This document shows positions 28,791 to 31,590 of a stretch of 64,000 nt of DNA, piece by piece (position 1 is the stretch's first letter; the number at the start of each line of letters is the position of its first letter). Made by a program: the position numbers and the translations under genes. Origin of the DNA: Cyanophora paradoxa CCMP329 (taxonomy: Eukaryota; Plantae; Glaucophyta); the NCBI GenBank assembly GCA_004431415.1, contig QPMI01000066.1, positions 310,001 to 374,000 on the forward strand, in the 5' to 3' direction. The notes under the pieces were generated by a model, which searched no databases, had not been told where the DNA came from, and was given only the letters and a program-made list of their open reading frames with translations.

Positions 28791-31590
28791 ATGGCCGCGT
28801 CGTTCGATTATGACTTTGCCGTCATTGGCGGCGGATCCGGCGGCATGGCCGCGGCCAAGGAGGCGGCCAAGCTCGGGGCGAACGTAGTGTGCTTCGACTA
28901 CGTCAAGCCTTCGCCGCAGTGCGCCAGCGCGAAACGGGGTGCGCGCTCCGCTCGTGCGCCCTCCGAGGCGGCCGCGCCGCGCAGGGGCACGCGCTGGGGC
29001 CTTGGTGGCACCTGCGTGAACGTCGGGTGCGTTCCGAAGAAGCTGATGCACTACGCGGGCATCCTCGGCGCCGGCATGCACGACGCGCACGAGCTCGGCC
29101 TCAAGGCGCGCCCGCCGCGCCGCGCCGCGCCGCCCGGTTGCGCGGTTGCGCTTTCTGAGACGCGGTTGCGCGGCGCAGGTGCCGGTGGGAGAGGACGGCC
29201 ACTCGCACGTGAAGCACGACTGGGGCCAGCTCGTGGGCACCGTGCAGGTCCACATTTCCGCCCGTCAGACTCGAACTCGAACCCGAGCCCGCCGACGCCT
29301 CCCGCGCTCGCAGAACCACGTCCACTCTCTGAACTTCAGCTACCGCGTCGGCCTCCGCTCTGCAAAGGCCCGCCCGCGCTTCCTTCCCGAAATCCCAAAG
29401 CTCCCCGCCCGGAATCGAACCCGAGCCGCAGGTGAACTACGTCAACGCGCTCGCCAAGTTCGCGGACCCGCACACCATCGCCTACACCGAGAAGGCACGC
29501 GTACCCCCGGCTGACCCCCCCTACCCCCTTCGCCTTCAGCTTACCGGGTACCCCTTCTTGCAGGGTGTGGACAAGACGCTGACGGCGAAGTACATCCTCA
29601 TCGCCGTCGGCGGGTACGGGATCCTTCAAATCGGACCCTCCAATGTGTCCGAGACCGGGGTACGCAGGCGCCCGCAGATCCCGGACGACGTACCCGGGGC
29701 CCGGGAGTACGCCATCACGTCCGACGATGTCTTCTCGATGACGAACGAGCCCGGCCGCGTCCTCTGGTGAGGGGCCTTGGTACCCCAGATCCTCGAGCGC
29801 CCCCCTCTTATCCGAGAGGGGTACAGCGTCGGCGGCTCGTACATCTCGCTTGAGTGCGCTGGCTTCTTCACCGAGCTCGGCTACGACACTTCGGTACCCC
29901 CTTTTCCCCTTCCTGGCGCCCCGGGTACTGTTTTGAGGCGAACGGGCGCCCCAAACAGGTCGCGGTCCGCTCGATCTTCCTTCGCGGATTCGACCAGCAG
30001 TGCGCCGACAAGGTGGGTCGGGTTTCGCGCACCCCCGACCGGCGGAAACGTGACTCGCGCCGCCCGGCAGGTCGCGTCGGTCATGGCCGACCTCGGAACG
30101 AAGGCGCGCTGTACCCCCCGCCCACCGCTCGCCTTCCTCGCTTACCGTACCCCAGTTCCTGCGCGGAATCATCCCCAGCGCCATCCAGAAGCGCGAGGAC
30201 GGGCGCTTGGAGGTAGGCGTACCCCCCCCCCCGCTCTCCTCGTACCCCTCCGCTGCCCAATGAGCCTCCGTACCCCAGGTCTCGTTCAAGAAGGCGGAGG
30301 GAGGCGAGGCGGTACCCAGCCAGGTCTTCGACACGGTGCTGTTCGCCACCGGTCGTACCCCCGACGTCAAGGCGCGCCGTACCCCCCGGATCCGCGTCCC
30401 GAGATGACGCCGTACCCCGCAGGGCCTGAACCTCGATGCGGCCGGCGTCAAGACGCTGAAGAGCGGTGCGCCGGTCCGCCGCTCCATCCCGTACCCCCAA
30501 TCCTTAGCCGGGGTACAGGGAAGATCCCCGTGGAGGACGAGCGCACGAACGTGGAGCACATCTTCGCCGTCGGCGACGTCATCCCGACCCGGTACCCCCC
30601 AGCCTTCTCCCGTACCCGTACCCGTCTGGGCGGGCCGCGGCTTACCCCCCGGGGCAGGCAGGAGCTCACGCCGGTGGCGATCAAGGCTGGGGAGATGCTC
30701 GCCCGGCGGCTCTTTGCCGGCTCTACCCAGGCGCGGCCCGGCCGGCCCGCCCTCCGCCCTCCGCAGCGCTGAAGTGGTAAGCCGCGGCGCAGGTCCTGGA
30801 CTACCACCTCGTACCCACCGCCGTCTTCACCCCCGTCGAGTACGGTGCGCGCCACACGCCGGCTCCTGCTAGGCCTGAGGAGCCGCGAGCCGCGAATCGA
30901 CGCGTACCCCTCTTCGCTTCTTCAGGCTGCGTGGGGTACAGCGAGGAGGAGGCCGAGCGCCTCTACGGCAAGCAGAACGTCGAGACGTACCTCTCCGTGC
31001 GCGAACCCCGTACCCCTCCCCTCCTCTCCCTCCCCCGACGAGTCCGAAACGCTGCACCCCCACAGGAGTTCATGACGCTGGAGTTCGGGGCGACGCACCG
31101 CAAGAAGGCGAAATCGGCCATCGTCGACGAGCTGGACGACGCCATGCAGCCCATGGTAACCCGCTTAGATTTGATTTGGTACCCCGGCTCAGGATGTGAC
31201 GTCTGCGCAGTGCCTCGCGAAGCTCGTCTGCCTGAAGGAGAACGGCGTCGAGCGCGTGATTGGTACCCCCGTAAAGATGCCCCGTACCCCCGCGCGGCCC
31301 TTACCCCCGCCCCAGGCTTCCACTTCGTCGGCCCGAACGCGGGGGAGGTGACGCAGGGCTTCGCCCTCGCCCTCAAGCTCGGGGCCACCAAGAAGGACTT
31401 CGACAACCTGGCGCGTACCCCCCTCGCACTCCGTCCCCCCCACCCGTCGGATCGGTAACCGCGTACCCCCCGCCCGCAGGTGGGGATCCACCCGACGGAC
31501 GCGGAGGTCTTCTGCGCCCTCTCGATCACGCGGTCCTCGGGCGAGGACTTCCGCGCCTCGGGCGGCTGCGGCGGCGGCAAGTGCGGCTAA
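28791..31590 (+). CDS. High-Mr thioredoxin reductase with C-terminal CGGGKCG redox centre (21 exons)
   Basis: [16 protein letters not shown] motif, [17 protein letters not shown] active site, [42 protein letters not shown], and the terminus [14 protein letters not shown]. Confidence 0.96.

Follow-up and report, generated by a model that had tools for sequence, protein, structure and literature searches.

GTACCCC in very short introns of distal gene regions of Cyanophora paradoxa, a putative transcript-level element

The published assembly of the glaucophyte alga Cyanophora paradoxa has a G+C content of 67.6%, 9.2 introns per gene and a mean intron length of 86 bp (PMC6704402), and the G+C content (66.5%), very short introns and intron density of the 64,000-nt stretch analysed here (strain CCMP329, contig QPMI01000066.1, positions 310,001 to 374,000 of the forward strand; hereafter the window) fit these values. 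Within the window, the word GTACCCC accumulates in short introns of six genes, among them a thioredoxin reductase gene with RNA-derived introns. The original prediction had noticed an excess of GTAC in these gene bodies and had ascribed it to a signal at the DNA level; from its strand and its placement, the word is in our view most probably a splicing-related signal that has not been described before, and not a mark of DNA methylation.

Thioredoxin reductase gene and its introns

The gene at 28.4-31.7 kb gives rise to a spliced 1.9-kb transcript, which is represented in the contigs of three putative RNA runs, each from a different study. Its features are the following.

28791..31590, + strand: thioredoxin reductase gene, 21 coding exons and 20 introns within the coding sequence, open frame of 1548 nt
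28511-28573 and 28650-28723, + strand: introns of the 5' untranslated region of the reductase gene, from RNA contigs
28511..29431, + strand: six promoter-proximal introns without GTAC, with donors GTCCGC, GTGCGC, GTGCGC, GCGCGC, GTCCAC and GCCCGC
29495..31479, + strand: GTACCCC zone of the reductase gene, 16 introns of 51-81 nt

The 15 listed joints of the RNA contigs correspond to GT-AG or GC-AG introns of 51-74 nt, while the other introns were placed by reading frame, exon by exon, and are consistent with the RNA contig pieces, bringing the total to 22 introns of 51-81 nt. Both a 6.5-kb DNA contig and the spliced RNA contigs (three studies) match this stretch without differences, and the agreement of such independent contigs with the window rules out an artefact of assembly or polishing. 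GC donors are used by 7 of the 22 introns (29106, 29368, 29495, 30104, 30372, 30731 and 31411), six of them supported by RNA contigs; our literature search returned no report of frequent GC-AG introns for Cyanophora.

The predicted product is a high-molecular-weight thioredoxin reductase with the tail GCGGGKCG, encoded in 31480-31590, and its homologues carry Pyr_redox domains. The same tail is common to several homologues in our library (P0014, P0124 and P0133); it corresponds to the Cys-x4-Cys tail of Plasmodium-type enzymes, not the selenocysteine (Sec)/GCUG tail of animals. RNA contigs of two runs match just the exon stretch 29595-29716 and have unlike sequence on both sides of it; these probably derive from a paralogous disulfide-reductase transcript.

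Between 29480 and 31480 we counted exactly 37 GTAC, against 6.2 per 2 kb expected from composition, and in the 1.1 kb from 28406 to 29480 there was none, in line with the roughly 37 copies and the GTAC-free start that had been described earlier for this gene. According to the RNA-derived junctions, 27 of the 37 copies are intronic and 10 exonic; the intronic ones are located at the donor, 4-14 nt behind it, where they typically follow GYGCGCN, or else between AG and the branch-like site. GTACC(C) is present in 13 of the 16 introns of the zone, often in two or three copies; one intron contains GTAC only (29614-29667) and two contain none (30013-30070 and 30731-30792). The chance that the first 6 of the 22 introns would all be free of the motif is 3.8e-4. 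Upstream, the RNA contig extends to 28407, and the first copy of the word occurs at 29501, which is about 1 kb from the transcript start.

Abundance and strand of the word in the window

GTAC occurs 277 times in the window, compared with 98 +/- 9 in dinucleotide-preserving shuffles, and the heptamer GTACCCC/GGGGTAC, counted on both strands, 103 times, compared with 5.9 +/- 2.3 in dinucleotide shuffles. GTACCCC is the most frequent 7-mer of the window when pure G/C repeats are set aside. Conservation is limited to the core GTACCCC(C)(C) and a C-rich sequence leading into it. The orientation of the patches tracks the strand of the gene. When the whole window was divided into compartments, GTACCCC was found (i) 71 times in introns in sense, where 4.4 copies were expected, (ii) 11 times in introns in antisense, where 1.1 were expected (about 10-fold), (iii) 7 times in exons in sense against 3.0 expected, (iv) 5 times in exons in antisense against 2.7 expected, and (v) 9 times in 17 kb of intergenic DNA, both strands included. 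The ratio of sense to antisense copies in introns is thus 6.5. Inside the zones, the word reaches a density of 27 per kb in introns and 9 per kb in exons.

These numbers bear directly on the possibility that distal gene bodies are acted upon by a DNA methyltransferase, or by a DNA-binding or chromatin protein, for which GTAC serves as the target. A mark of this kind would fit the palindromic core of the word, the enrichment of the heptamer in both orientations, the involvement of zone exons and the regional character of a zone that begins about 1 kb from the transcript start. A methylation target should, however, be independent of transcript strand and intron boundaries, whereas the word shows a 6.5-fold sense bias in introns, is tightly anchored to intron ends and is three times as dense in zone introns as in zone exons; it is not in excess in intergenic DNA or in the introns of neighbouring genes, including intron-rich ones, and CpG is not depleted, its observed/expected ratio exceeding 1 everywhere. 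We consider a DNA-level mark quite improbable, and the symmetric methylation, linker mark or mutational signature proposed in the original prediction gains no support from the window.

One intergenic cluster stands apart. At 8160-8300, nine GTAC lie within about 125 nt, including GTACTGGTACTGGTAC and two palindromes of the GGTACC type, in an AT-richer spacer without C-runs. In appearance it differs from the intron word, and it could have a regulatory role.

Genes with and without the word

Genes outside the reductase locus were modelled with our own gene finder, which relies on codon scores, GT/GC..AG ends and a length prior and makes no use of GTAC. It recovered 18 of the 20 verified reductase introns exactly, and some of its models elsewhere merged or truncated genes; gene identities were checked by Pfam on single exons. 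In addition to the reductase zone, the following regions were delimited.

1923..3700, + strand: zone of a G-patch/CMTR1-like gene, 11 of 13 introns positive, first 4 negative; predicted model with ATG at 952
25975..27173, - strand: zone in a gene earlier called EF-hand, 7 of 8 introns with GTACCC, the eighth with GTACC only; predicted model
56030..57400, - strand: zone of a GH13 (alpha-amylase family) gene; predicted model, Pfam
59238..60140, + strand: zone of a rhomboid gene; predicted model, Pfam
62000..64000, + strand: zone in the last gene (earlier called CFAP20DC); poor model
33625..37362, + strand: ABCG transporter gene, negative control, 21 predicted introns with GTGCGC/GTCCGC donors, GTAC in 0 of 21

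The positive genes are therefore the six named above and in the preceding sections: the G-patch/CMTR1-like gene, in which Pfam found the G-patch domain, the gene earlier called EF-hand, the reductase, GH13, rhomboid and the last gene. In each of them the first 2-9 predicted introns are without the word and are followed by a run in which nearly every intron has it. All of the zones that had been pointed out besides that of the reductase were recovered, and ABCG and MVP were without a zone, as had also been stated. ABCG contains 11 GTAC between 33625 and 37362; in MVP (13481-17103) there are 7, close to the count of about 8 given before, and the word is found in 1 of 17 introns. The dependence of the excess on the gene and on the position within it, as originally described, is thus borne out, and so is the distal start of the zones; the distance from the ATG to the zone ranges from 0.36 to 1.4 kb rather than from 0.7 to 1.2 kb, with the reservation that the modelled ATGs of GH13 and rhomboid, and hence their distances, are uncertain.

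In the gene earlier called EF-hand, 4 negative introns precede the zone; Pfam reported no domain in its large exon, and a metagenome search for relatives of that exon (27175-27552) found none. A tandem pair of paralogues lies at 17747-21449 and 23401-28200, with 82-95% identity. Copy B is without 770 nt (25984-26754 of copy A), which comprise 5 exons and the intervening introns, and at the deletion the start of one GTACCCCC intron is fused to the C-run end of another, leaving a 12-nt remnant. Copy B, in which a donor also has a G>A change and three of the four motif copies are degraded, is probably a pseudogene. In the predicted ABCG intron 34892-35088 (197 nt), about 36 consecutive C lead into low-complexity sequence that is CT-rich.

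Placement of the word within introns

The placement of the word was surveyed in 193 short introns, from which the following arrangements are exemplified.

29894..29958, + strand: class-a intron, GTACCCC is the donor; also 30592, 31263, 3112, 3219, 26766, 26526 and 26039
30372..30422, + strand: class-b intron, GC donor GCGCGCC with GTACCCC at +7 and a second GTACCCC 7 nt before AG, RNA junction; further class-b introns at 29495, 30104, 31411, 1923, 3361, 26631 and 26158
30466..30518, + strand: inverted 3' variant GTACCCC ... GGGGTAC-AG; also 29767, 57248, 57396 and 60052

The word was found at offset 0 in 10 introns, where it is itself the donor (G|GTACCCC) and always follows an exonic G. In other introns it lies at offsets of 4-14 nt from the donor, with a peak at 6-8, usually behind GCGCGCN or GTGCSGC. 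An additional copy may be located 5-30 nt before AG, on either side of a branch-like CTTAC, CTGAC or GTAAC. In the 3' variant, GGGGTAC is followed by AG or by up to 7 nt ending in AG; this was seen in 6 introns, 4 of which have a forward copy upstream. Donor-proximal copies that are not the donor (n=21) occur in 12 of 68 introns with a GC donor and in 9 of 115 other introns with a GT donor. Sense enrichment in introns at set distances from the splice sites, as is expected of an intronic splicing enhancer, is what we observed, and the earlier statement that the excess goes beyond splice donors is correct.

Zone introns stand out by their C-runs and not by their C content. C content is alike in zone introns (0.44) and in the others (0.42-0.44). 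Runs of at least four C amount to 3.6 per 100 nt in the zone introns of the reductase, where 20 of 36 have the GTA prefix, to 0.5 per 100 nt in its 5' introns, where 0 of 2 have it, and to 1.7 per 100 nt in ABCG introns, where 0 of 28 have it.

Two further roles of the word were considered and rejected. A hairpin joining the intron ends is not indicated by folding of the 22 reductase introns, which gave z values from -1.6 to +1.9, around zero, with pairing of GTACCCC and GGGGTAC in just 3 of the 22. The A of GTAC is a poor candidate for the branch point, as it is often 4-9 nt from AG and a better CTTAC, CTGAC or GTAAC lies upstream. We also noted that two GH13 introns on the - strand (56739-56813 and 56477-56537) have a G-rich 5' half in sense with GGGGGTAC or GGAGGGTAC, as if the usual C-rich unit had been inserted backwards.

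Copies in exons at synonymous sites

Several copies extend the pattern into the coding sequence of the reductase gene.

30355..30361, + strand: exonic copy in GGT CGT ACC CCC (Gly-Arg-Thr-Pro), contiguous in RNA contigs
29690 (GAC GTA CCC), 30312 (GCG GTA CCC) and 30811 (CTC GTA CCC), + strand: exonic GTA CCC copies, RNA contigs

Since these stretches are contiguous in RNA contigs, they are exonic, and the codons that had been cited from 29690, 30312, 30355 and 30811 do remain in the mRNA, as does TAC GGT ACC in the GH13 model. The gene has a G+C content at third codon positions of 0.93. Its zone exons contain 4 GTACCC where 0.17 would be expected from synonymous shuffling within the gene (p<0.001), and its 5' exons contain 0; an enrichment at synonymous sites, which the original prediction had named among the tests of its idea, is accordingly present. 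CCC follows 3 of the 4 GTA valine codons; all 3 Val-Pro pairs in the zone are spelled GTA CCC, while the two pairs upstream are GTT CCG and GTG CCG; and the sole CGT arginine codon of the gene sits in CGTACCCCC. In the predicted models, GTACCC likewise tends to recur in the zone exons of the other positive genes, and exons outside zones have 0 GTACCC in about 6100 codons. The word does enter codons, then, as had been claimed, but most GTAC of the reductase zone are intronic (27 of 37), and the exonic density is about one-third of the intronic one.

It may be asked whether the pattern could arise without selection, as a regional by-product of slippage or ectopic gene conversion among nearby C-run repeats. 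Several introns consist of 2-3 degenerate tandem units starting with (G)TACCCCCG, 16 direct pairs lie within 5-35 nt, the 770-nt deletion in copy B of the tandem paralogues joins two such sites, and one synonymous change from the preferred codon suffices for each exonic copy, which are features that such a process would produce. Neither the fixed offsets from the donor nor the sense bias is explained in this way, nor is it explained why the word is so sharply missing from the initial 4-6 introns and from whole genes whose introns are similarly C-rich; in ABCG, C makes up 44% of the intron sequence, but a GTA prefix precedes 0 of the 28 C-runs. We regard this explanation as very improbable.

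Origin of the introns

A different rival holds that the word is the best-preserved end of a family of introner-like or reverse-spliced introns, inserted in this lineage and without a function of its own, the distal bodies of certain genes being the insertion targets. Genes of bacterial origin in Cyanophora have 13-27 introns (PMC6704402), and large-scale intron gain must therefore have occurred in its lineage. Exons between positive introns are shorter than others, with medians of 66 and 86 nt, although this difference is not significant (p=0.11). Pairs of introns from different genes that align end to end with a score of at least 34 number 16, against 6.2 in shuffles that keep the motif, and tandem copies as well as inverted GTACCCC...GGGGTAC pairs are present. 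The end-to-end similarity that defines introner families is nevertheless missing: in an all-against-all comparison of 50 positive introns the best score was 43, and no family highly similar from end to end emerged. The inverted pair is limited to a handful of introns, the offset from word to donor varies, intergenic DNA has no intron-like copies, and no consistent target-site duplication was seen, the ambiguity of 0-4 nt at the junctions being that expected from AG|G sites. A staggered-cut model in which GTAC is duplicated on insertion was rejected, since both copies leave with the intron and none remains in the exon. The main text of introner surveys makes no mention of Cyanophora.

Intron positions in other species offer a second line of evidence. 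Most of the reductase homologues examined are transcript contigs without introns. For one genomic orthologue (L004, from NCBI assembly GCA_964200215.2), the annotated model runs out of frame after the fourth exon, and the junctions were re-read by hand; its introns are without the word. The two positions that it shares exactly with Cyanophora (29368 and 30013) are both motif-less in the latter, and 0 of 14 GTAC-bearing introns are exactly shared. This comparison points to a gain of the positive introns but is no more than suggestive, its statistical power being low with a single orthologue and exact sharing of 2 of 6 motif-less but 0 of 14 GTAC-bearing introns (p about 0.08). L004 clearly lacks eight of the positive and three of the negative introns, one positive intron is 1 nt off (29495) and one is uncertain; motif-less introns are absent from it equally often. 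In a further homologue (L007), each of the two assessable junctions is 2-4 nt from a Cyanophora intron. Such near misses (29495 and L004, 1 nt; 28919 and L007, 2 nt; 29368 and L007, 4 nt) could be due to intron sliding tied to shifts from GT to GC donors, or to chance at this intron density. A passive relic, finally, does not explain the exonic copies at synonymous sites. On balance, we think of a functionless relic as possible though doubtful.

A transcript-level element of an intron class

The word occupies intron ends on the sense strand at characteristic offsets, in certain genes and in their distal parts. With moderate confidence, we read GTACCCC, on the RNA strand, as a putative functional cis element of a distinct class of very short (about 50-80 nt) spliceosomal introns. 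It would act as the donor itself, or as an enhancer that closely follows weak or GC donors and precedes the acceptor. A splicing factor, of the poly(C)-binding type or a small nuclear ribonucleoprotein (snRNP), would bind the word on the pre-mRNA and stabilise the recognition of the intron ends, as TIA-1/Nam8 sites or G-triplets do elsewhere, and the word would be kept by selection. Weak selection for the same binding, or conversion from neighbouring copies, would give rise to the copies at synonymous sites of exons, and the intron class itself may have spread by intron gain. Further observations that support this reading are the decay of three of the four motif copies in the damaged paralogue and the absence of the word from all 21 ABCG introns, which have consensus GTGCGC/GTCCGC donors.

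Several points weigh against a splicing element: (i) the analysis brought up neither a binding factor nor a complementary small nuclear RNA, and an Rfam scan of the window gave no match and therefore no small nuclear RNA that could be compared with the word; (ii) the word is dispensable for splicing as such, given that it is missing from whole genes and from every promoter-proximal intron; (iii) its reverse complement is enriched in introns as well, sometimes as an inverted pair with a forward copy, which is unexpected of a pure single-strand protein site; (iv) the reading does not account for its exclusion from the 5' ends of genes; and (v) RNA-verified introns come from the reductase gene only, the other gene models being predicted.

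A bolder version of the splicing-element reading would posit two modes of intron recognition, in which promoter-proximal introns and some whole genes depend on a GTGCGC-type donor, and distal introns, including many GC-AG introns, on GUACCCC and a dedicated factor, which might be a poly(C)-binding protein or an snRNP put to a new use, U11 for instance. Such a position-gated second splice-site code seems unlikely to us.

Literature searches for the word, for intron signals of Cyanophora, for GC-AG introns and for introners in Cyanophora returned nothing relevant, and we came across no description of a single exact heptamer that is present in about one-quarter of the short predicted introns of a region such as this window, stays out of the first kilobase of genes, is missing from entire genes and spills over into synonymous sites of codons. 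The word gives an entry point to the recognition of introns that are very short, GC-rich and frequently of the GC-AG type, and it is a possible trace of the way in which an anciently diverged alga reached about 9 introns per gene. It could also improve gene models, which according to the authors of the genome need manual curation (PMC6704402).

Comparison with known systems

GTAC-specific DNA methyltransferases are known from restriction systems of the RsaI or CviQI type, whose sites share the palindromic GTAC core with the word described here. The word differs from them in its strand bias, its anchoring to intron ends and the C-run that it requires.

A resemblance to the 5' splice site of U12-type introns (/RTATCCTT) is evident, as GTACCCC matches GTATCCT at 5 of 7 positions and starts 10 introns. 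U12-type (minor) introns have a rigid 5' sequence and TCCTTAAC at 10-15 nt from the 3' end, and this identity was rejected: the offset of the word from the cleavage site ranges from 0 to 14, many of the introns have GC-AG ends, which are unusual for the U12 type, and instead of a TCCTTAAC-like branch site at a fixed distance there are branch-like CTTAC, CTGAC and GTAAC at -12 to -26. Canonical minor introns exist separately in the Cyanophora genome. Its minor-splicing machinery is reported to be unusual, a survey having detected U11 as the only minor small nuclear RNA in Cyanophora (PMC10639083).

Introners are intron-generating transposons of Micromonas, Aureococcus, dinoflagellates and others (PMC9860276, PMC12130899). 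The introns described here are likewise many, short, confined to genes and mostly in sense, and belong to an aquatic alga with evidence of large intron gain; unlike introners, they form no end-to-end family and have no extragenic copies, no consistent target-site duplication or terminal inverted repeat was seen, and just a word of 7-9 nt is common to them.

Intron content that changes along the gene, switching about 1 kb from the transcription start, recalls intron-mediated enhancement in plants (IMEter), where promoter-proximal and distal introns differ in composition. The plant signal is dispersed and enriched in proximal introns, whereas the Cyanophora word is exact and enriched in distal ones.

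Intronic splicing enhancers include the G-triplets of short GC-rich vertebrate introns and the U-rich TIA-1/Nam8 sites behind weak 5' splice sites. In contrast to these, the putative enhancer described here is one exact heptamer (GTA followed by a C-run) that can itself be the donor, is limited to some genes, is excluded from promoter-proximal introns and appears in inverted form at the 3' end. In common with them, it is a short word in sense near the ends of small introns, often repeated, placed behind weak donors and not universally essential.

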